A stretch of DNA of 64,000 nt from contig JALMLS010000585.1 in the NCBI GenBank assembly GCA_038496445.1, forward strand, positions 310,001 through 374,000, written 5' to 3'. Origin of the DNA: Trichosphaerium sp. ATCC 40318. Taxonomy: Eukaryota > Protista > Tubulinea. Both the position numbers and the translations under genes were made by a program. The notes under the pieces are model-generated. The model did no database searches. It worked only from the letters and a program-made list of their open reading frames with translations, and was not told the origin of the DNA. Positions 1-16,100 of this stretch are shown in pieces; the stretch's first letter is position 1; every line of letters begins with the position of its first letter.

Positions 1-758
1 GTCGCACTAAACATTCATCTGCTTAAAGGTGTTCATCATCGACCTACTCTGACTAGAGTGACTGATGAATGCTTAAAAGCTTTGGGGGTGTTCACACTAT
101 TATACTGAGGTGCACAAAAATAACAGATGATGGCATTCATGCGCTCAAACGTGTTCACACAATTGGCCTTTCAAATACAAGTGTAACAGGTGACTGTTTC
201 TCTTCTTTGGCTTGTCCACACTATTGCTATTTCGAGTTGCCCTATTGCTACTGGTGTACAGAACTCAAAGGTGTTCATTCAATCTGCTTAGCTGAAAAAA
301 CCATCACAAACAAGGATCTATGCGCTCTTGCTGGTGTACATACCATTCACCTTACTGGCACATCAGTGACAGATGAAGGTATCAAATCGCTGGCTGGTGT
401 TTATAGTATTAACCTTGGCGTTGCCATCAAGTGACAGATGAAGGTATAAAAGCGCTTGCTGGAGTTCATTCTGCTACTCTTATTAATACATCAGTGACAG
501 ATGAAGGCATCAAAGCGCTTAAAGGTGTACATTGGATTAACCTCAGTGGTTGTACACAGATAACAGATTATGGCATCAAAGCATTAAAAGGAGTACAGGC
601 AATTACCCTCAGTAACACCAGTAAAAGATGAAGGCATTAAAGCGTTGAAAGGAGTTCATACAATTATCCTCAATCACACTTCAGTGACAGATGACGGTAT
701 TCAAGCACTAGCTGGAGTACACCAACAAACCATAAAGCTAGCATTGCAACAATTATAA
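1..758 (+). pseudogene. Frameshifted leucine-rich repeat gene remnant (22-aa GVHTIxLxxTxVTDEGIKALx repeats); 5' end outside window
   Basis: The same LRR unit recurs about 10 times but switches frame at roughly 85, 212, 425 and 622 with no intron signals. ORFs 69-434 and 431-631 each hold only part of the array. Confidence 0.7.
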
Positions 759-784
759 TTTTTTCGTATTTTACAAGATTTTTG

Positions 785-2257
785 CTAGTGCCATATTGAA
801 TCTGTGTCAGTAGAACTTTTTACGTATGGTACAGAAGGATTTTCTTCCCTCCAGTTTTCAGTCGTAGACGAGTAGTATGTCGTAATAACCGTAGTTTCTA
901 AGGTGTAAAAGTTACATGCTTGTAGTTAACAATTTAGGTTTTTGCTACATGATATTATTGTATTCGTACTTGGTTTGCAGCAACTGAAAACGTTTGAACC
1001 ATACATAAACAAGAACGTATTAAATATTGGGAATAGGATATGTGGTATTGATTCAAGCACTTCAAGAACAAACGGCTAAAAAAGTGTATGAGTTTCGAGC
1101 GTGTTGACGTTTTCTTTACATACAGTGTTTTCGTAATCAAGAAGCACGTAGACATATAACACTCCTGAGAATACATAGCATAATAGAAACGCAAGAGGGT
1201 ATCCAATAAGCTTTACAATAAGTGGTGCTAATAAATCCTTGGCACTGTTTACATTCATAGCTTTCTGGCAAAGAGGTTAATCGTGTAAACAAACCAATAA
1301 AGATTGAACGTACTCTGAAGTTCACAACGAAAAATAGCTCGTATATTGACAATGCGTTGAGTACAGCAATAAATATGAATGAAATAAAGAACGGGAATAC
1401 AGACACAAGCCCAAATAATCTATCGAGTTAATGACAGCGAGATATTGGTACAAACGTACAACTTATCTAAAAGAGACTGACCCTTCATGAAGCACCTATT
1501 AACAGCTGTTACTAACACCTTTGATATTACGTCACTTACCCACCCCAAGGCTCTCGACCATAAGTTCTTGTAGCAAAAGGTGCCAGAGCCATGACAAGAG
1601 GAAACACAAAAATGAAGAATAGTATAAAAGGCTCCGCAACCACAACTGTTTTCCTGTGCAAAACAGTCAACTTAAAAAACACGTGTTATATTTTAGCATG
1701 TGCGAGCACGTGATTTTAATACAATAAAAAAAATGTACACGTGATTTTACATGTAAAAGGTAAAAAAAATAAAAAAATGGATCACGTGATTTATGTACAC
1801 CGATAGATAAGCGTACTTGTACTTGATGCAGAAGAATATATTTACAGATATTGCTGTGACTACGAAAAATACTGTCAAGTGAGCACAAACAGCGAAATAA
1901 GCTGCCAAGGAGCAAAACGGTTCTAAAGTGTCTTTAGCAAAACTTTCAGGCATTCAAGCAAGTATAAGTCTAAGGTTGCTTGGTTTTGTGCGTACTAATA
2001 GTTTTTAGGGAGGATAGAGCGAATATTATTTCGCTAAGGCATAATACCCAATCTACAATCGATAAATACAATAGTAGACGCGTGGAAAAGTCTGTCATGT
2101 CTCTGTAGAAGAATAGAATCAAGAACATCCATGTTGCCAGTATTAAGGCTATAAGACCAACTACCACCGTAGAAAATAGGAAAAACTGTTCTTCGCTGAT
2201 AGCTACTAAGACTAACACCATATTGATGGCAACCTCAGCCGCAAAATTTATTTTCAT
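785..2257 (-). CDS. Seven-transmembrane GPCR, slime-mould cAMP-receptor-like family (multi-exon)
   Basis: Spliced exons give TM1-2 (RLLLYLSIVDW), TM3 (FCSLAAYF...VVTAISVNIFFCIK), TM6 (KLIGYPLAFLLCY) and TM7 (PIFNTFLFMYG), then a Ser/Thr-rich tail ending in TAG at 785-787. Start is 2257 or 2221. Confidence 0.75.
1680..1790. promoter_or_regulatory. Cluster of four CACGTG (E-box/G-box) motifs in a GPCR intron
   Basis: CACGTG at 1680, 1707, 1738 and 1783; the last three read CACGTGATTT. Function is inferred only. Confidence 0.35.
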
Positions 2258-2317
2258 GAATTTTTTGAGTGGTCAAACTTAGGTTCACAACTTTTGCGGA
2301 TAGCGTGTGAGCACAGT

Positions 2318-4615
2318 ATGGGCAACTTCAAATCTAAAAAAAAGCCTCTAAATCAAAGACATCGTAAAGAGAATCAGAAACGTGTGCTACTCGTAGGTAT
2401 GACAGTGGTAGCTATTTATAGATAGCTACACAATTTTTTGTTGACGTTCGAAATAACATCAAACTTAGGACCTAGCATGAGTGGTACTTGTTCAGAATCG
2501 TTTTAGAGTTAATGTGATTTACCGAAAACGTGTTTAGGGAAATCAAAGCTTCTGTTGCAGTTTAGACTCTTAAAAGAGGAAAAATTAACCCCTAGGGACC
2601 ATCAGCATTACAATAACCTGGGTATATTATTTGTACAGAGGTTCTTACGAGTTTTATCTGCACAACCTGAATTTTCAACTGTGGACAGCGTAAGATACAT
2701 CTAAAGCACTAATTAGTAATATATGACATAAAATAGACGACACAAGATATGGTGAAGTCGTTTTTAGATATGAATGATTACACATGGACACAACAACACA
2801 TTGACGCTTTAAAACAGTATTAATATTTTTATTTTCTAAGTCAATCTCTTTGTGAACTAGGCTAGGTTGAAAGACAACGAAGAATTCATGAACATGATTT
2901 TGTATACTGACTTTAAATGTATCGTTTTATCCTGTAAGAAAAACATGAAAGCGTGAGTGGATTGTTAACATTATGATACCTTTGTTTTAACTTTTTTTTT
3001 TCTAAGCTACATTGATTCAATTTGCTCTCAAACTGCAGATTCTTTCGTTGTGACTTATGAACAAAGGCTTAACTACCATTCACATTCTGTCGGCATTTAT
3101 GAGCTAGAAGGTGAAGTTGATGGTACTGAATATAGATTGGGGGATGTTGGAGGTTTGTTTTTTAAAGTCTTTGTGTTTTCGACTTTTTTCTTTTCTGCAT
3201 ATCAAATCCTTCTAGGAAGTCGTATGGAGAGAAGACGGTGGATACATGTTTTATATGACATGGATTATTTAATCTATTGTATGTCTCTTGATAGGTGAGT
3301 GTCATATTGTGTTATGTAATTGACCCTCTCAAAAAGTTACTTGTACTACCTTTGGGAAGATGATACAATTAATGCGTTTGAAGAGTCATTGGAAATACTC
3401 AAAGGTCTAATACAAAGTTCAAATGTCAATGCTCCTATTGTCCTTGTATTGACAAAACTTGACTTGTTTGAGGAAGAGATACAAAACCATCCGGAAAAGT
3501 TTAGAGAGTTCTTCCCTGATTACAAAGGTACCAACCCGTTTACCCATGTAGCTTATACATATAATAGGAACAACAATGAATACATATGATTGTGCCATGC
3601 ACGTGTTCAATGTCATTTGTTCAAGACTAGATAACTCGGCATGTTTTCTTGGTGCTACTTTTACATCTATGATAGAAAATCCCAACGCGATATCATGTGT
3701 TTTAAGGCTAACCTCAGGGAAAGGAGACGTCAGTAGTGACACAGGAAAAGAATTTTCACCATGTAAGTATAATACTAAACCTTTCATAAATACACTAATC
3801 ATGCCATAGTATCATCCATCCAGCCTTTAATGTTTCCAAGAAAAACATCAACACTGTTCCTTGATGTTGCAAAATTAACCCAAGAAATATATGCCAACAT
3901 GAATGCAGATAATGCCTTTATTTGTTCCATACGCAAATACGGAGCTTGTAAACATAAATTCAAACTTCTAACATCCCTCAAAAAGCTGTACAAATCAGAG
4001 ACTCAAGACTTTGATATTAATACTGGCACAGATTGTATTAAATGTCACAAGGTTAGTCCCTCTTTTTTTTTGCTTCTACTTATGCAATTCAACTAGGCGA
4101 TATTGATGTGCCGAGCTACATTTTTTGAAGGAGCTATTCTTTCTAACAATCTTGGGACAAATGGTGACGACAATACAAGCATTAGCTTAGAAGAAGATGT
4201 GTTCATTATCAAAACTTTTATTCACTTTGCATACCTTGATGAAATACCTCCTAATCTTGATTTGGATACTCTATTGAAGCTCTTAAAATTCTCAGATAAG
4301 TATTGTATAGATTCCCTACAATCTGTTGTGATATTCTATGTTTTTAATCATAGTACACATGATAAGATTACTAACAGCGACGAAGATTATTATTATCTTT
4401 CAAAAATGAGCGAATTTCTTGAATATGGATTATTGGGATGCAACTCGTTAATCATTAGCAATATAACTTCCTGGTTTCTCTGTCAGGAATCTAAAAAGCT
4501 AAATATGTTTCTTAACAAACACAAGGATACTGTTGCAGTAAAGCATCTCTTAGATCGAACTGTTCTGGTGCTACAAAACACTGATGAACCTTCAGCAAAG
4601 AATATATCCAAATAG
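2318..4615 (+). CDS. Divergent heterotrimeric G-protein alpha subunit fused to a C-terminal BTB/POZ domain (multi-exon)
   Basis: MGNFKS myristoylation-type N-terminus; G1 VLLVGPSMSGKS, G3 DVGGSRMERRRWIH, G4 VLTKLD. GT-AG introns join the G-alpha exons in frame to ...EFSP-LSSIQPLMFP... and on to a BTB motif (DFDI...IKCHK-AILMCRATFF...FIHFAYLD...LLKFSDKYCIDSL). Confidence 0.8.
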
Positions 4616-4837
4616 GCATACAGACAATAACACTTCGCACAGTAATTAAAATACTCAGAATCAAGCAGTACACCAAGCTACGGCGTCTGTACTAAAAAGA
4701 GGCAATGGTTTTTTTTTTGAAGAAATTGTAGTTGTACTGTTGTCTACCAAGTTCCTAAATACACTTGTGAGGCTGAACGGGTGCTCTGCTTGGCTCTAGG
4801 AGTCGTTGTTTTCTGCTGTAAGCTTCTACCAATCAAA

Positions 4838-4909
4838 GCCTGTGTAGCTCAATGGCAGAGCAATGGCCTTCGAAGCCAGAGGTTGCGGGTTCGATCCCCG
4901 TCATAGGCT
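4838..4909 (+). tRNA. tRNA-Arg (anticodon TCG)
   Basis: Cloverleaf: acceptor GCCTGTG/CATAGGC, D arm GCTC/GAGC, anticodon arm TGGC-CTTCGAA-GCCA, T arm GCGGG-TTCGATC-CCCGT; T-run shortly downstream. Confidence 0.92.
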
Positions 4910-5009
4910 ATAATTGTTTTATTGCAAACCATAAAAGAAGCGCTCCACCTTCTAAACTAGCAAGCGTTGGGAGCTGTTGGTGATCGCAGCAAGTAGCAAG
5001 TCAACTTTT

Positions 5010-7770
5010 TTATTTTGTTGTTGAAACTACCGCATGAGACCACCGTTTACCGCCTGTACTTGAACCAGCGATCCCGCATATTATCATACTAGATAAGAAC
5101 TTGCTTTTGATACTAGGATGACCCCAGTCCGTTATCTTCCAAGGTAATCCACCCAACTTTCTTACAACCTAGATAATAATTATCAATGGAGATTTTGTTT
5201 AACGAAAAAGCGCCTCAGACGTGCCTGAATACATAACTTTTGTAGAGCTATATGGTTAAAGAGTACACTAAAAAGAACGATATATGAGCAAGAAAACTTT
5301 GATATAACAAAACCATGTGAAAGAAAATAGTACCTTGCATGAACACATTGAGAGACAACATTGTAATGGTCAAGTTTTTCCTTTATGACTCTATAGAGGT
5401 GATCGTTATCACCTTTTCTACCAGAAAAAATAACGAGAACAAATCTGTATTTGGCCCCGCTGTCAAGCTCTTTGTTCAACTTGCCTTCTAATCTAAAAAA
5501 GATATCTGATTAGTATCTTTTTTGTCAAACTTTTTCTCTTACTCATTATTTTTAAACACAACCACTTTAGTTTGGTCGTTAGCTATCATTCCATACTCTT
5601 TCATTTTTTTAAAAAAGCTATTCTCACTATTTTTAGCACGACTAGTGACAAAAACAATCCAAGGATCTCTATAGTCCAATCCCCTCGAAACGGTGTTTTG
5701 ATCCCAATGAGTTGTTTTGGGATCTACTTTTTTTGAATTGCGTGGCGCCATCTCTAGCCTAGATACAAACATTATTGTTGTTGGTATAAATAGGTGAACA
5801 ATTTTAAGTAAAACGCACGTGATTGGGTTAATATAAACACCGTCAAACTGTACAGGAGCATCCTCAATAGCAAAGTTCCATTCATTGAGATCTCCTCCCT
5901 TTGATTCGCGCAACATATTTGCATTGTTTTTTATGACATCATATCTGTGACGTGCATCAATCTTTGTTAAACTATCCATTTCTTTTATATCCTGTGGACT
6001 AACACTCCAATTAGGTACAAAAGCAACACTATTCCCATTGACCATTAGCACGTACCTTAGGTTACCAATGATAGTGCATAATTGAGGTAGGTACCTCGTA
6101 CTCTTGTCATTCTTTCTAGCTGGACTGCAAAAAAAGGTGAGAAAGAAGGAAGTGACCATTGGTGTATTTTACGCACACTATCAATGGTTGAGTAACATCA
6201 ATTTTTATTTTATATGTATTATAGTAGTACTCTTCAAAGGTAAGTGAGTTCTCATCCTCACTGTCAATTCTGAGTTCGTTCAATGGTATACGCTTGTGAA
6301 AGTCCAAGGATCTGTAAATCGAGAAGGTAAGTATGAAAATAAGGCAAAGGTAAGAAAACACCTACTCTGCAAAAAAAGATACTCTACGCTTGCCGTAGTT
6401 TGTCACCATTTGCTTATGACAAATGAAGTCCCTCAATTTTCTGTTGTGAGGAAGGTCATCAACCTTACCTATTGTATACAGTTAGCTTAAACATGTGGAA
6501 GTACAAGTACTAACCATATTCTTTGATTGTGTCCCACACAGTCTCTACAGGTAAGAAGTAAGTAACGTCACCTAGAGACAAGCAAAAAAAAAAACTCACG
6601 TGTTTTAAGACACTTGTAGATATTGTCAATAAATATTAAATCTACATCAGCGCAAACAAAACCACGCCCGCGGTAAGGTGCTGTTGCACCTTCATAAATA
6701 TCCATGTATCTCATTTTTTTCACTGGATTTTCCCTCAATTGGTCACGTCCTAATCTCAATGGAAATTTTTTGCCAAGCAGCTTAAACAAGAACAGTATTA
6801 GAACCTTATCTGCTCGTTAACTATGAATAAACGTACCATTCTCAGTATTGAGTTGATGATGTGGCTCCTAGCTGCAGCATTCGTATTAACATCAACTGTA
6901 GCTACATACTTGAACTCTAGGAAATAGTCTCTTTTTCCTGGGACACCTTTCAGTTGCGCATCTATAAAATGAATGAGTAGAGGACATGTTAATGTAAAAA
7001 AAATGAAAGCAAAGTAAAGTAGTACAGCGTGACCCCTCTTAAAAGCAAATGTGGCTGATATAAACGTACTTGGCAAGGTTGCATCTTCCTTTAGAAGATA
7101 CAAGTTTCTACCACCCATTATCCAACTACAAGATAACTAAATACACAATATCTAACACTTGCTAATACGCACGGGGTATTTGGTATATTGTTATTAATCC
7201 ATACTGAAACCAAGATTGAGAGTAGTCTCATCGAATAGATCATAGGCTAAAAAAACGTGGTAATCAAAAATGGATTAAACGAAAACACGTGCGTACCTGT
7301 ATTTCGATAGAATACATCTGTATTGCACATTTGGGCTTGATATGCACCTTGAATGCATTTGACACTAGCCACACAGTTTTGTTTGGCTCACATTTATACA
7401 AAAACGACTTTTTTACTTCATCTTCATCGACGTCATAATCTGAGTCGTAGTATGTATACTACATACAAGTAAGCAGAGAAAGACATTGTGTTCATTCGTA
7501 CCTCCGGCTCATATCTTATTCGGTCATATTTACCTTTAAAAAAAAAGTACATGACATAAAGGTGATGACTTAAAACTGTGGTTGAAAGAACACAAACGTA
7601 CCATCCAAATCGAGAGGCGGTAGTTGGCTTCTTCCAGGCCTTGGTCCTCGCCAACCGCCTCTACCACCTCTACCACCTCTACCACCTCGGCCGCTTCTGG
7701 CACCTCTATCACCCCCGCCTCTCTCTGGAGCTCTTCCTCGTGGGGGGTAGGGTTCGAACCTACGTGCCAT
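5010..7770 (-). CDS. PIWI-clade Argonaute (RG-rich N-terminus, N, PAZ, L2, MID), C-terminally truncated at the start of the PIWI domain
   Basis: RGG/GRG N-terminus; PAZ (TFEEYYYNTYKIKIDVTQPLIV...YLPQLC); MID (LYRVIKEKL...VVSQCV); QKLCIQVVRKLGGLPWKI, then MIICGIAG and TAA at 5010-5012. An alternative splice would add only ~20 aa. Confidence 0.8.
7655..7690 (-). repeat. 9-bp tandem repeat encoding (RGG)n in the Piwi N-terminus
   Basis: CC(G/A)CCTCTA repeated about 4 times on the + strand. Confidence 0.8.
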
Positions 7771-8250
7771 ACTAATACGTTTTAGTGAGAAAAAACCGTT
7801 GGGAACAAGTTCACAAATTCGTACGTACGACTACCTTTTTGCTGTACACTTATTCCTGAAGCTGTTTACCGTTGACTCTATCGCAAACAGTGAGTAGTAC
7901 CTTTTAGCATTATGTCTCTAACGTACCTTCTTGGAGTGTGTATCACTCTAATATTGAGGTTTGGAGACCGCTAGTAACAAGTTGTGTCACTAAAATAAAC
8001 GGTTTTTGTTTACATAAGTCACTGTTAAGTTAAGGAGTACGAAACTTGTATTGTACACTTCATAACAAGCTTCTGAGAGTCTAAACTAAAAAAACGTGTT
8101 TCTTGAATTTGGAACCTGGAAGATTGTACTTGCTTTTTTTTTTGTTTATCGTTTATTATTATTCTACAAAGTTGTTTTGTACATGAGAATTGGAAAATTT
8201 GCTTATTCAAGCAAGCAACAAGAACAAAATCCTCATGTTTTTTTTTTGGT

Positions 8251-11200
8251 TTAATTGTATTTTTGCATAAACTCATAGAAAGAGAATTCACCTGGAGCTA
8301 ACCCGTAAGCATATACATACCGACTAGCTAAGTGAGCACTAAGTAGTGCAGCAATATAAGCTTCTGGTACACGCTCAACAACCTTATCAAGTCCAATAAG
8401 GTCAAGAAGAAGTTTTGGAATAGCTTCTTCAAGAACCTTTTGTTTTGTCTTAGGATTACTCCAAAGGGAAGACTCTGTTATTGTCTGGTTCAATGCATTA
8501 ATCTTTGCTGATACAGCATCAGATAGTACACACATTGGGCGACCAGATATTTGGTGCTCATTCCAGATACACTCGCTAAAAGAAGAAGTAAGAAAACAAT
8601 CCGATTTTTTTGAAGGAAAAAAAAAAGAAAGAAGAGATATTTTTGCTTTTCGGTTTGTGTTGAAAGTTACTCGTACAATTCATCTCTGGCATTATCCTCA
8701 ATACGTTTTTGTGTTTCTTTGACATAATCACCATAAAATTTAGGAGCGACACCATCCTTAACACACATATGCTAGAGCAAAAGGTTAATACTTTTCCTTT
8801 TGAAAAAGCAAAAAAAAAAAACATACTTCTTGATGCTCTTCATCAACTAGCGCAAGCGCTGCCAATACTTCCATTGAAGAAGATGTAACACCACCCTTAT
8901 TCGCAGATGCATCCTTCAATACTGGAATACCTTGTTCTTCAATCTTAAGTCTAGCTTCTTGAGTCAAGAACAAGTTGGCGCCCTCAACAATATTACTAAA
9001 GAGAGGCTTTCCATTGTTTCCAGTCAACACCTTAACAACATACGTCAGTACACCCTCAAAATGAATGACTTTGTAACGTACCTTGGAGACATTGTTGATG
9101 TTAATGGATTCAGGTCTACCGCCACAAGGAACGAAAAAGTCGCAAGCAGCGTATTTTGTCAAATGGAAGGTATTCCTCAAGGTCATACCGCTATGAACCT
9201 TTGTACCATCTGGTAGGGTAACATCCTTATCAGCAAGGAGTACAAGGAAACCATCTAGATGAATAAAGGTAAGATAAGGCGAAAAATAAAAAAAAGAAGA
9301 GAACGAGGCTCTTTTTGAGTTGCAAATTCTTCTCAAACAAGTTGTTCGTTTACGCTTTGTACGCACCTTTTGTTAGCTTGCTTCTGTCAAAGTGGTCAAC
9401 CATTTGTCTAGCTTTAGCTAATCTAACGATTTCTTCCTTGTTGATACCTTGTGGATCATACAAGACACCAGCACCATCAATGATGACTTTAGTCTTATCT
9501 TCTGATAACAAAATCTCATTTGAACCAAGATCTCCATCAGGTCCGCCTGTTTGTACTTTAAGTTGATCTTGTGCCTTTATACCCTTTTTGCGCATAATAC
9601 CAAGAACATATTGACGGACAGAGCGTGTAGTCATACCTGTACAAGACAATATTAGAATAAATCACTTTTGAGTTTTTTGGACTAAAAAAGTGACAGCGTC
9701 AACATACCGTATCTATCATGTGGAATACCGCCAAGAGATTCTGATTTACCAGTGGTAAAGGCAGTCCAGTATCTGTATCCTCGTGATTTAGCATGAAGAG
9801 CAGCCCAGTCCATGAGATCTAAATCAAAGTTGTCAGTTATAAAATCTTAAGAGACCTTTAGGATTTTTTTGAACGCACCGGCTGTTCCTTCATCAGGTCC
9901 ACAAAATACGTATTCGATTTTATCGTAGTGATTAACAATATCCTCATCACCATCACTCTCAGCGAGCAAGATATCAAGTATACTATCAATATACTTACGG
10001 AAAGCAACAGTAGCCTTGTCTTGGTGTGCCATTGACAACAGAATTGTACCTACAGATCAGTTAAGTCATAGAACAGCTTAAATTGGCCTCAAAAGAAAAA
10101 AAAACAACGAGTGTAGCTTACCCTTTGAACCACCTTCTGGGATATCCTTATTCTTTTTAAACTGAGTTAATGCGAGATTGTAATTCTCATCAAAGACTTT
10201 CTCCACATTTCTCAAGAATTGATGCTCATTTCTAGATTTGATCATACGAATACCACCACGAGCAATATCAGAGAATCTAATATGGAATCCTCTGAATTCT
10301 GCACCAATAAATTGGAATACAGCATAAGGAACCTCTGGGTAGTCATTCTCAAGGAAACTTGGTTCGAATCGAAGCTTTTAAAGAGATTAGAGGGTTGATT
10401 CTTTAGTTTTTGTAGATTGGCGTACCGAGAGTGCGGCTTTGTTTCTCTTATAGAAATTTGTGATTTGCAAGTGAGAGTTGAGGGTTAGGAAAGCCTAAAA
10501 GAAGAAATTAGAGAAAGTAGATACATATGCACTACGCACAGTCAAGATTTCTCTGTCTAGAACATCACCGACTTCACGATTAATTTTAGTGCAGATCTCG
10601 TCATTCCAAACAGGTTTTGGAGGTGTTTCACCGTTTGCGCGTGGCTTAAAGTGGTGCTCGAAATCAGCGTATAGTTCTTTAATCAGACCAACGTTGTTGA
10701 AGATAGCTTGTTTGCAACGACTCTACAAGTTCAGTTAATACCTCGTAGCTTAAAACAACTTATTCTATGTTACCTCAGTTGCTGCTTCACTTCTGATACG
10801 CTTACGAAGGCGAATCAAGCGATCTTTGTATGTAGGTTTATCACTTAACTCATCCCAAAGCAACTTAAACTCATCAGATTGTTTGTTTAAGAAATGGTAC
10901 GAGAATTTCCATCCGGCATAGGCGTATACGACCTTAAATAGTAGTTAGTTTAGTTGCTTTGTCTGTGAGGAATAAGGGCATACCTCTTCAGGTTGTAGTT
11001 GACCACCTTCTAATAGAGGGAAGAGGGATGTCCTCGGTAGAATGAACAAGAAGTTGACTTGAGTCATAAAGTTATCAACAGCAGGAAGAGAGCTCTCATC
11101 TTCACACTCAATGTAAAGCATGTATACGGAGATATCATTAGAGAAGTTCTCAACAAACTTTGACCTTGCTGTAAGCCCGTTAAGCTCCAAAAGAATGGAG

Positions 11201-14200
11201 ACAGAGGAGAATAAACTAAAATAACAGTTAATACACGTAGTGAAAGTTTTAAATAACAGTATACGCTTACCTGTGAGTGAAACCAGCTGGGAATGCAATG
11301 GTGACTGGTACAGTTCCTTTGTGAAGATTTACCTCTTCAATATTGGATCTGGTCACAACAGGACACATCTTTCCAATAGCCTCTTTGATAACATCTTCAT
11401 ATGTCTTTTGAGAGTCTGTTCCTTTATCACGAAGGAAAGCGCCAGTTGCAACACGTTTAAGAGAAGTTTCACCTTCCTCAACTTCTACACAGTAAAAGTA
11501 AGAATAAAATAGACAGCACGGTAGGCGTACTTGGATTCAAATAAGCGTGTTTTTCTACAATGTAAAGTCCAACACGAGGGCTTGTTGGTGCGCCATCAAT
11601 AGTTGCCTCAGAGAGGAAGAAGCGCTAATAACAAAGGATAAGTATCACTTCTTTTGAAGATGTAATCAAAAAAACTACAAGAATACGTACAACTGAAGGT
11701 GCTAGTCCGTTTGTTGGCTTAGCAGACTTGACGTAACCAGTACCAAGATATTTAATCTCAATCTGTCTTTCAATAGTTTTACTGTGTGTAGTAGTAATGT
11801 AAAGAGCATGGTTAGCTTCTTCTCGAGCGTATCTAAACGTGAAAAATGAATAAAACGATGATTAATCGAAGAAAAATGGATTTAACTTCAAGTTCTCTCT
11901 TCCTCGTACCTAATGTTTCCACCAGTCAATTTAGCATATTGCTTAGCAGTAATCAATGCAACAACATGATTAGCAATAGTATGAGGTGAGTTGATAACGA
12001 AATAGTATGCTGGGAAACCAAGTTTGTTGAAAAAATAATTGACTTCCTTCTCAGTGACGACTTCACTGTAGGACCTAATCAAGGACATTAAAGACAACTC
12101 TTTGGTGTCAAAACTATACAACATACCCTAAGCGTAATACGAGATTGTATACAATCTTCATTTGATCGGAGTGACCAGAGCCAACTAAACAACTTGTTAG
12201 CCATCCGAACTTTTCAAAAAAAAAAAACGTAAATGAAGAATTCTTGCTTGTACTTACAACTGACAGTTGAATCACTTGAGCTTAGTAGAGTAGATGTGAT
12301 AGTATGATTAGCAAGAGCTCTAATTTTTCCAACAATCTACGTACAACGTCAACAATGGAAAAACGAAATCATTTTGTACCTCAGTTTGTGCAGTACGAGG
12401 TTTCAAATCTCTGAGCTCTAATACAGCGAGAATACGATCTCCGTAACGGATTGGAACGCATAGTAGGTTCTCGAATTTAACAATGATACCAACAGAAGCA
12501 TCTTTGCATTCCTCCAAAGTGTACTAAACAAAAAATGAGTCACAAAAAAAAAAGATTGTATACATTACAAAAAACAACGTACACGTTCAATATCTTTTTG
12601 TTCAGATATCCAGACAGCTTCAGGTTTATCTACGCTGAAACCAACAGCTCCTTTACCATATGGTAGTGTTGTGGCGAGTTTAGAGTGGTACTAAAAAAGA
12701 TATTAACATCAAACAAGTCCAAACAAACAAAATTAAAGAAGTTTTACGCTAAATAGTTATTTTTCAAACTCTGTCGTTATTTAAGTGTTCAAAATACGAT
12801 TAATCGGTATAACGAACCTCTGCTAAAGCGTTCAAGTCATCAGAAAGTGCATACCATAACCCAGGGCATCTTAAATTTTTGTCTTTCTCGTTTGTGATCC
12901 ACACAGCACCTACAGGGTGTAAAGATATCGAAAAAAATGATGAAAATATTATTGGAGTGTTTTAAAGAAAATTCAAAAGGAAAACAACTCCGAGTTTTAT
13001 TTTTCCTTCTCACGTACCATAAGAAAACTTCATATCATCGCAGATAGTCACAATAAGCTCTTGTAAACTAGCCCAAAACTTTGGTGTACCCTAACCACTA
13101 GTTTAAGAACAACAGACGGAGAAACTTCTAATCCAAAAAAAAAAATTACCTTTATTGTATCGATATTCTTGGTCTGTAGAGATCCACTGCGAGATATGAG
13201 ATCCTTAACAGTGTTATGTTGTCCTCTATTAGCATCTTGTAGAGGCGTATTACCCCACCTAAAAACTTCTTAACTCACAAGTTCGGAAAAAAAAGGCCAA
13301 CTTTTTGTAGTTTTATGTTTTTCGAAAAACAACTTTATTACGCTAAAACCAAAAAAGAATTTTTGTTTTCGAAATATAACTTTAGCACTCGAGTGCTTAA
13401 TTTAGTGTACATACCTATCAACAACGTTTACAAACGCTCCATTTTGAATTAAATGATCTACAACCTCTGTTTGACCAGTTAAGGCTGCGCGATGCATAGC
13501 TAGAGCATTTTAGACAACAAATTAGGAAGGAGCTAAATGTACTAGCTATTTTTCCGTACCTGTGCGACTATCGTAATCGAATGCATTTACGTCTACACCA
13601 CTCTTAATGAGGCGTGATACAGCCTCCAAGTCTCCTTCTCTCGCTGCCTCAAAAAACTCGGGTTGCTGAAAAAGGTAAACACAAGTGTATGTCGCCATTA
13701 ACACTATGAAGCGTTCTAAGGCGTATTTCAAGCCGTACCAGAGATTTTAGAGTGTTTTTGTTGGCTCCTTTACTAACTAGATAACGTGCAACCGCAACGT
13801 GCTTGTGACGAGTAGCATCGCTTAGTGGAGTACCGCCCCACCTGAACTTACATCAGCAAAGTGAGGTGAACCAAAATTTAACGTTACAGTTTTTTGTAGT
13901 TTAAGAAAACGTCAATAACAGTGCTACGTACCTATCTTCGGCGTTTACGTCGGTTTTGACGGTTTCAACTAAAAACTTTACTGTTTCGATGTGACCTTCC
14001 GCAGATGCAAGATGGAGAGGTGTGCGCAAGTCGTAATCGGGTTTACTTAGGTCCCAGCTTTTCGCGTGGTAACCCTAAAAAGGGGTGTTGAAAAACATAA
14101 CTCATACTAACTGTTTTATACCTTTAACTCTTCAAGCGCTCCTTTGGATGCTGCTAAGATTACTTTGAATGCGTCAGCGTCAAGAGAAGCCAAGATCATT

Positions 14201-14235
14201 GGCATAGACGGCTTTTTAGCAAGTTCAGATGTCAT
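8251..14235 (-). CDS. gdh2: NAD-specific (large, Gdh2-type) glutamate dehydrogenase with N-terminal ankyrin repeats and a GAF-like domain
   Basis: GDH motifs: GFHIRFSDIARGGIR, QFKKNKDIPEGGSKG, FCGPDEGTA, GGIPHDRYGMTT, QTGGPDGDLGSNEI, FFVPCGGRP, IVEGANLF, KDASANKGGVTSSS. Upstream in-frame exons encode ANK repeats (DYDLRTPLHLASAEGH; DRWGNTPLQDA) and a GAF-like segment (LPYGKGAVG...LLCVPIRYGDRILAVLEL). Confidence 0.88.
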
Positions 14236-16100
14236 TTTTTATGTATTATGACTGTAATTGCCGTCTCTGTAGAAATTTATGTATCTGGCTGGGGAAGCGC
14301 AAAATTGAATTCTCGTGACTTTGCAAGTTTTGGGGTGAAATTGGGTCGTGATAACACGTGAATGTCGCAATTTTTCGAAAACAGGCGTATTTGCGCGTGC
14401 CCGTTCCTTTACATACGCGTTTTCGCTAGTCCGAGCGGTTTGAACATCATATGATGTTCAATAATGTGCTGTGACCTCCATTTACATTTTATAATGTTCT
14501 GTAAGCAAGCTCAAAACACCGAACAGCAAAAATGATGCTTTTGCTAACGAAATTCTTGCTGCCAAACCGTGAACTGTTCTGTTAAATGAAGTATAGGATT
14601 ACTACACGCGCTAGTAGCACGTTGGTGGGTTGAAACCATAACTTTGGTCCTTCTGTAACCGTATCAAGTACACTGTACACTTCCTGCGTAGTTTGATGAA
14701 GTAGAGAATACTTTAAGAGCTGTGGTTGTTATTTGAGAGCGTTAGAATTTTGATTTTGGGAACAGAAAGTAGTTTTTTCAACTTAACGCACTCACAACCC
14801 TTGCCTTAACGCCCCAGGACGCTGTTCTTGCTTTGTATCCGGCAATTCAGACAGCGGTACAAAAGACCGCGAACTTTGGGAACGTACTACCCTTCTGTGG
14901 TACATGCAGTCAAAAATAAAAAGCATTACTTGCCTGTCATAATCCGCTTGTATCTGACGCCTGTTCAAGTGGCTGGCGTGTACTACAAAGTGTAAACAAA
15001 AAGGTTAGTTCAACTACCTTTTGGGATTCCCAATGTATTGGTCTAGGCATCGTGTACAGTAGCAAAGCACTTCCAACTGAACTAAATATTTTTCAAAATG
15101 CTGGAAAGATGGGTTAGAGTCGAAATGACTTTGATACTACTGTCCTTAAGGTTTGCATTTTATTCTTTTTACAAGGTCGTTATAACATTGTACTGATACT
15201 ACAGAATCATCTCTCCGTCGTGACATAGTTCAATAGTTTAAACCAAAAAAAAGGCTTGATCACGGTTTATTGCGTTTAGCCATACAGTAGTTACGCACGT
15301 GTACGGGATTTTATAAGGGCCCGGTGAACTTGGAACAAACGGACCGTTGCACGTGGCACTCTAAATGCCTTCGGCGTCTTTAGTTATTTCCCAAATCCTG
15401 ACACAACTGGTGTTTGTATCAGCGCGTGGTACTCTTCTCGATAGTTTTAGTTGCGTTTACTATTGTACCAGTGACTTGGTCGGTCATTTCGAGGCCGTTT
15501 GTCGTTGATAAAGAGTAGTATACTTTGCCGTCAGGTAGTAGCTGTTTGGTCCTTAGCACCTTGTCTTGGTGTAATCTAGGTAGAACCAAAGTTTAAGCTT
15601 CGCACCTGTACAAGTGAAGTGGGGAGCAGGATTGTTACCTATCTGTTAGGTAAGTATTATAAATGTGTTATCAAGCACAACAAACTGAAAGAAGTAAGCC
15701 ACTGTGCAGTATGCACAGTCTTCTTTCAGCAAAGCGCATACAATCAAACCCATGTCACTTGTCAGCCACAATTCCGAGCATCTTACTTGTACATTAACGC
15801 CTTCAAAGACTTGCCATAGTGTTTTGTAACTGGGCAAAATAATTTTAGCTTTGGACTGCCAAACGTGTCAAAATGTCGACGCGAGCATTTTGCTACCTTT
15901 TAAGTACAATCTTAAATATTTAGGGGCCAATGTACTCATTGTGACTCTCCAGTAGAATAAATTAAGAGATACAGTTCTTGATGATGAATTTGTTAAGTCG
16001 TTTGTGTGCACGGTTTACGAGAAAAGTTAACTTACTTTCTTCGCAACCATCTGGGAAGATTGGTTAAAAAGCTATATAAAGGGTAATCGCTTAGTACCGA

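Follow-up and report, generated by a model that had tools for sequence, protein, structure and literature searches.

Truncated and non-slicing Argonautes

In the solved Argonaute structures, guides lie in a channel to which the PIWI lobe contributes one half, and the 5′-phosphate pocket of the MID domain is complete only with the C-terminal carboxylate. Human AGO1 and AGO4 are catalytically inactive eukaryotic Argonautes with a complete PIWI fold, and the short prokaryotic Argonautes are naturally truncated proteins that work without slicing, keep MID-PIWI, lack N-PAZ and have partner effectors. Here we describe an Argonaute gene that ends at the start of its PIWI domain, beside a tRNA-Arg gene, in a 64,000-nt stretch of the genome of Trichosphaerium sp. 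ATCC 40318 (contig JALMLS010000585.1; C26:310001-374000, hereafter the window). We put the probability at about 0.78 that this gene is an ordinary haplotype-specific deletion allele of a full-length Argonaute, that its missing part lies on the allelic contig C513, and that the truncated copy is likely null or decaying.

The full-length copies related to the window gene lie on C513, on C41 (a paralogue) and on C409 (a more distant member of the same subfamily). Those on C513 and C41, as well as that on C409 at the first catalytic position, resemble AGO1 and AGO4 in lacking slicer residues yet being conserved and transcribed, whereas the window allele lacks the complete PIWI fold that AGO1 and AGO4 retain. 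The short prokaryotic Argonautes are also truncated, but they keep the opposite half of the protein and represent a conserved design rather than a private deletion. With respect to the PIWI clade (PIWIL1/2, Siwi, Piwi-A), the subfamily shares an RG/RGG-rich N-terminus and probably the order N-PAZ-MID-PIWI; it differs in carrying Ala, Glu and Gln (A/E/Q) at the catalytic positions and an acidic insert of about 55 residues, and the window allele differs further in having no PIWI domain.

Truncated Argonaute models beside intact paralogues are already on record. MtAGO12c of Medicago truncatula has an incomplete MID domain and no PIWI domain (PMC3098777), and the sex-determination candidates in the sex-linked region of Salix include a truncated AGO4 (PMC9917877). 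As in the window allele, these models end before or in the PIWI domain and stand beside intact family members. The window allele is set apart by a cause that can be read, namely an apparent 3.4-kb deletion with both breakpoints set against an undeleted haplotype, and by its membership in a very divergent protist subfamily rather than a plant AGO group.

The undeleted haplotype

Searches of the genome covered the 70-Mb assembly (642 contigs). In genome-wide Pfam scans, the PAZ model matched the window gene at C26:316155-316280 and matched C513 with nearly the same score; the Piwi model gave no match on C26 and matched C513 2.2 kb downstream of its PAZ match. C513 (18,599 bp) is collinear from end to end with window 14-15259, at 95.3% identity to the left of the break and 98.4% to the right. 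The single large difference between them is a segment of 3,446 bp (C513:4939-8384, corresponding to L006 1940-5385) that is absent from the window at 5016/5039. Homology of the window gene to both C513 and C41 ends at window 5039, and homology of C41 to C513 goes on through all 8 of the PIWI exons beyond that point. Because of this continued match, the full-length arrangement is read as ancestral and the window arrangement as a deletion. The locus thus shows what an allelic deletion should show: a second contig collinear along its whole length, one large indel and ancestral content within it. The features at the breakpoint are as follows.

5010-7770, minus strand: truncated Argonaute allele, divergent, PIWI-like and slicer-dead (exon model and translation)
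5010-5168, minus strand: exon 16, KLGGLPW..MIICGIAG..GGKRW, where the PIWI domain begins; Ala replaces the first catalytic Asp (translation)
5017-5038, no strand: deletion junction, about 22 nt between homology blocks (BLAST and pairwise alignments)
4837-4910, plus strand: tRNA-Arg(TCG), convergent with the truncated gene (ARAGORN; Rfam RF00005, 67 bits)

The right breakpoint lies about 7 nt upstream of the exon 16 donor site, and the window frame therefore continues into the junction sequence. After GGKRW, 9 codons (SHAVVSTTK) and a TAA are encoded by the junction and the tRNA flank. The approximately 22 nt of the junction match neither side cleanly; they may be filler, or what is left, in degraded form, of the opening bases of the next intron. 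The tRNA, for which ARAGORN and Rfam give ends of 4837/4838 to 4909/4910, stands at the same place on C513 (L006 1755-1828), 106 nt short of the left breakpoint. A recent tRNA-associated rearrangement had been proposed in the preliminary description; the evidence favours a rearrangement, in the form of a 3.4-kb deletion on one haplotype, whereas nothing links the event to the tRNA itself, which both haplotypes carry at an unchanged position.

On the minus strand, the extra segment of C513 holds 8 exons that extend the frame from GGKRW by 284 codons to a stop. These exons carry PIWI landmarks in the usual order (YREGG, RPTRYE.LFD, LTYGLC.LYFN and SPVRMAQ). One of them gives a weak Pfam Piwi match (E 0.0056), and a three-copy profile of the same exon searched against PDB places PIWIL1 and Siwi on top, at matching C-terminal positions, with E values of about 0.4-0.6. 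The plus strand of the segment holds a MORN-repeat gene (Pfam MORN E 2.7e-14).

Taken together, these features are consistent with one deletion of about 3.4 kb on one haplotype of a heterozygous locus. The event would have removed the last 8 of 24 exons (284 of about 905 codons), and with them nearly the whole PIWI domain and the convergent MORN gene, and would have brought the tRNA-Arg gene up to the truncated end of the Argonaute gene. The frame of exon 16 would then read 9 codons into the junction sequence before stopping, and the ancestral full-length form would survive on the haplotig C513 and in the C41 paralogue.

Several further features of the locus were noted. The MORN gene (L006 2135-3630, plus strand) has at least 3 exons, is spliced and transcribed, and lies tail-to-tail with the Argonaute gene; the window haplotype lacks it, and the genome holds no near-identical second copy. 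The intergenic stretch L006 3060-3940 contains short repeats of about 60-150 nt that are dispersed over many contigs at 70-86% identity, and a further 523-bp piece (L006 3553-4075) has an 88% copy on C249. Divergence between the haplotypes is uneven, at about 5-7% to the left of the deletion (window 390-5016, with the G-alpha-BTB gene and the tRNA flank) and about 1.6% to its right (window 5039-15259).

Gene model and domains of the truncated allele

The minus-strand model comprises 16 exons from an ATG at 7770 to a TAA at 5010-5012 and gives an uninterrupted frame of 630 codons. Its introns (14 GT-AG and 1 GC-AG) measure 43-108 nt. Seven of these introns match joints of spliced RNA contigs aligned to C513, and the remainder were placed from GT-AG ends, the reading frame and three-copy indels that fall only between proposed exons. 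In order, the protein regions are assigned as the N-terminal RG tail, the N domain, PAZ, linker 2, MID and the first ~43 residues of the PIWI domain, with the following parts upstream of exon 16.

7602-7770, minus strand: exon 1, start codon and RG/RGG-rich N-terminal tail (translation)
6056-6468, minus strand: exons 9-11, putative PAZ domain up to the ..YLPQLC.. border with linker 2 (Pfam PAZ and profile searches)
5225-5758, minus strand: exons 13-15, putative MID with the Y..K..Q..K 5′-phosphate pocket, LYRVIKEK..SQCV..LQKLC (position and motif only)

The RG/RGG tail is kept in C513 and C41 with a varying number of repeats. Domain searches were made with single exons or three-copy exon profiles, and their scores are to be read on that scale. 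Pfam PF02170 matches exon 10 with an E value of 1.5e-4 and 22.2 bits, a single-exon score under the 28.8-bit cut-off. The three-copy profile of exon 10 recovers HrAgo1 (E 0.0015) and the PIWIL2 PAZ domain (E 0.027) from PDB, followed by other PIWI and Dicer PAZ domains. For exons 13-15, Pfam returned no family, and the MID pocket motif stands at the expected place. The PIWI (RNase H-like) domain is represented in the window allele by only its first ~43 residues before the stop; in C513 and C41 the domain is found, with per-exon Pfam Piwi E values of 0.0056-0.48. A single-exon search of PDB returned nothing, and exon-level Pfam searches returned weak matches for PAZ and one Piwi exon only.

All that had been described from the letters of the window survives this closer look. 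The RG tail, PAZ and MID pocket described as intact are all in the sequence, albeit with the weak PAZ match just given, and KLGGLPW is indeed followed by GIA, read as GIAG, at the first catalytic Asp. The frame was said to stop about 20 codons later and some 100 nt from the tRNA, with about 400 nt left before the next gene; the measured values are 18 codons past GIA, 99 nt from stop to tRNA and about 395 nt to the stop of the next gene at 4615.

In terms of family, the RG/RGG tail is present and the top exon-profile matches in PDB, near or below significance, are to PIWI-clade proteins, with no AGO-clade protein among the matches listed. Placement in the PIWI clade is a leaning rather than a result. 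Detectable relatives are scarce: phmmer, run with a 209-residue stretch of linker 2 and MID against 1.8 billion representatives, found no true relative, and its sole match, P0001 (E 8e-5), is taken as spurious since Pfam shows no Argonaute domain in it. A word-index protein search with the 52-residue last exon produced no candidates. Ten N-terminal variants of the junction-specific peptide were looked up exactly and none was in the collection, a result that is uninformative on expression.

Real allele or misassembly

The preferred reading requires that both arrangements of the locus exist. The alternative is that only the full-length arrangement does, and that a chimeric or mis-corrected read path dropped 3.4 kb from C26. 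The RNA evidence on this point consists of Logan contigs of RNA runs, which are recognised as RNA because the contigs skip introns. On the segment found only in C513, contigs with 0 mismatches cover a PIWI exon (X3 record 12) and the spliced MORN gene (X1 records 1-2), and the undeleted haplotype is therefore real and transcribed.

For the deleted haplotype, the key observation is a 465-nt contig from a separate 2015 run that aligns over the tRNA region. Its unaligned start equals window 4705-4736, where C513 differs, and it extends 174 nt beyond the aligned part, yet no far end of it is left unplaced. Most simply, this contig would cross the junction into exon 16. In addition, X4 record 20 is 2 letters off C513; because the number of allele differences in that stretch is also 2 (window 5729 and 5740), this record probably derives from the window allele. 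Other substitutions between the alleles in exons 12-13 lie at window 5869, 5871 and 5908.

The contigs themselves also favour two haplotypes. C26 is a long primary contig, and C513, an 18.6-kb sequence fully contained in C26 coordinates, has the form of a haplotig bubble. The contigs C549 and C37 show the same haplotig pattern at 98.7% identity (1.3% difference), and the assembly therefore retains haplotigs. Differences between C26 and C513 are mainly substitutions, and the indels of C513 fall mostly outside long open frames, which argues for real polymorphism over consensus error. Moreover, the flanks of the break are 2-7% apart, like diverged haplotypes, and a private structural difference is therefore plausible. 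No collapsible repeat is present at either breakpoint, and the 3.4-kb segment and the junction sequence each occur once in the assembly.

Some observations nonetheless weigh against a deletion allele in decay. The crossing of the junction by the 465-nt contig is deduced from the list of loose contig ends, and among the RNA joints listed none shows the breakpoint directly. The ~22 nt of the junction resemble the adjacent C513 sequence, aligning to it with several 1-nt gaps, and might be a poor consensus at a misjoin. Support for the junction comes from the Logan RNA contigs rather than from genomic reads of the strain, and the locus is represented by just two contigs, C26 and C513. Finally, the retained part looks constrained (a 630-codon frame and a 7:1 ratio of synonymous to non-synonymous changes, below), as would fit either a recent deletion or a truncated protein still in use. 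With the window-specific sequence beside the tRNA and the divergence of the flanks set against the gapped junction, we regard an assembly artefact as unlikely.

Catalytic residues and lesions in the other copies

A non-slicing Argonaute was among the options of the preliminary description, which had noted GIA at the first catalytic Asp. The motif itself is correct, but it is not specific to the truncated copy. The window, C513, C41 and C409 all have Ala (GIAG) in place of the first Asp of the catalytic DEDH tetrad, and this is therefore a trait of the subfamily and not an effect of truncation. In the full-length C513 and C41 copies, the three placeable catalytic positions (GIAG, YREGG and VRMAQ) read A/E/Q in place of D/D/H, the glutamate finger of the tetrad not being placeable, and both copies carry the acidic insert of ~55 residues. 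Because of these residues and this insert, the subfamily would have been non-slicing before the deletion.

C513 is itself damaged. A 7-nt deletion in exon 6 (L006 7244, equal to C513:10243, opposite window 6896-6902) leads to a stop 22 codons on, and it is shared by neither the window, C41 nor the distant C409. The search for a full-length paralogue suggested in the preliminary description thus yields the allelic C513 and, in addition, C41, which is 88% identical to the window gene and intact across 24 exons. From these comparisons, only the C41 paralogue looks fully intact. RNA contigs attributed to C41 have higher depth figures, although contig depth cannot rank genes.

Substitution patterns were also examined, as had been proposed. 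Between the window and C41 the ratio of non-synonymous to synonymous substitution rates (dN/dS) is 0.17, with a synonymous rate (dS) of 0.33, and between the two alleles on the window and C513 the dS is 0.028. Polarised with C41, the window lineage has 7 synonymous changes and 1 non-synonymous change, and the C513 lineage has 0 synonymous and 4 non-synonymous changes plus the frameshift; these counts are small, and gene conversion could distort them. As far as they go, they point to a longer period without constraint for C513 and to a recent or tolerated deletion in the window allele. Full-length copies are conserved at a dN/dS of about 0.17-0.19 and are transcribed, which, along with their missing slicer residues, suggests a binding-only function.

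Two side observations concern related genes. C409, a 26-kb contig, carries two head-to-head inverted copies of the more distant member of this slicer-dead subfamily (L008 2279-5943 and 6328-10000, 99.6% identical over 3.67 kb); the palindrome may be genuine or may be a hairpin made in assembly. A separate PIWI gene of canonical appearance is found on C37 (L004 5631-9421) and C549 (L005); its N-terminus is RGG-rich, and its GIDV, RDGV and AHK catalytic motifs are intact. When the window gene was compared with the C37 gene exon by exon with tblastn, no similarity was detectable.

Fate of the truncated protein

The remnant lacks the PIWI lobe and the C-terminal carboxylate and ends 43 residues into the PIWI fold, followed by the 9 junction-coded residues, and misfolding is therefore likely. 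The 630-codon product is thus probably not a working Argonaute, and the most likely status of the truncated allele is that of a null or decaying version of a redundant duplicate. Consistent with this, the other haplotype is frameshifted and the paralogue is intact, which together give the locus the look of a redundant duplicate on its way to being lost.

The opposing possibility is a working PIWI-less Argonaute, in which a 630-residue N-PAZ-MID protein binds small-RNA ends, acts as a decoy or partners the full-length paralogue in a dominant-negative way. This would accord with the intact retained frame, its good splice sites, the presence of the MID pocket residues and the contrast between 7:1 changes in the window lineage and 0:4 plus a frameshift in C513. 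The match of X4 record 20 to the window allele would fit as well. By an established rule, an mRNA with its stop in the last exon should escape nonsense-mediated decay; the stop of the truncated gene lies in its last exon, and the truncated mRNA is therefore predicted to escape. Against this, the truncation is private to one haplotype, with C513, C41 and C409 all retaining the PIWI domain, the product is likely to misfold as described above, and a recent deletion, or gene conversion from C41, would also account for the tiny substitution counts. Such a functional protein is therefore, in our judgment, quite improbable. A narrower version, in which the deletion allele has been kept because its product works without PIWI as a small-RNA 3′-end/5′-end binder or as a decoy against the full-length slicer-dead paralogue, is very improbable; were it true, the lineage would be long-term heterozygous, perhaps asexual, with complementary lesions on its two haplotypes.

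The preliminary description had also entertained a split gene and had proposed a genome search for an orphan C-terminal half. In such a gene the PIWI half would be encoded elsewhere and would act as a second polypeptide or be joined by trans-splicing. No orphan half was found. The truncation itself is the only point in favour of a split gene, whereas the missing exons, sought with genome-wide Piwi and PAZ models and with the 3.4-kb segment as query, occur on no contigs but C513, C41 and C409, where they directly follow the PAZ/MID exons of the respective copy; the separate C37/C549 PIWI gene is full length as well. BLAST of the 3.4-kb segment against the whole 64-kb window gave no match, so the missing exons are not elsewhere within it. 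Because the exons on C513, C41 and C409 adjoin their own N-terminal halves, a split gene is unsupported, and we consider it scarcely credible.

Returning to the deletion allele, the apparent PIWI-less architecture would be corrected to that of a broken allele whose complete form is on a small haplotig of the same assembly. For annotation of this genome, the two contigs should be combined, and the window model should not count as a new domain architecture. The locus would also offer a snapshot of a duplicate being lost, in which each haplotype carries a different disabling lesion beside an intact, transcribed paralogue. The subfamily is unusual in its own right: three of its catalytic positions read A/E/Q, its PIWI domain holds an acidic insert, and almost no relatives can be detected.

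Rejected causes and minor observations

Two further causes for the missing segment were considered and set aside. Programmed DNA elimination of a ciliate-like kind is not in keeping with the ordinary stop codons, the 43-108-nt GT-AG introns and the 22-nt filler, which bears no obvious excision signature. A tRNA-targeted mobile element is likewise rejected; the lost segment consists of two host genes and short dispersed repeats, with no transposon.

For the idea that an antisense 3′ untranslated region runs over the tRNA, the support is indirect. With respect to splicing, 2 GC-AG introns were found in the Argonaute gene (window 5169-5224 and L006 5121-5167), each backed by spliced RNA contigs.

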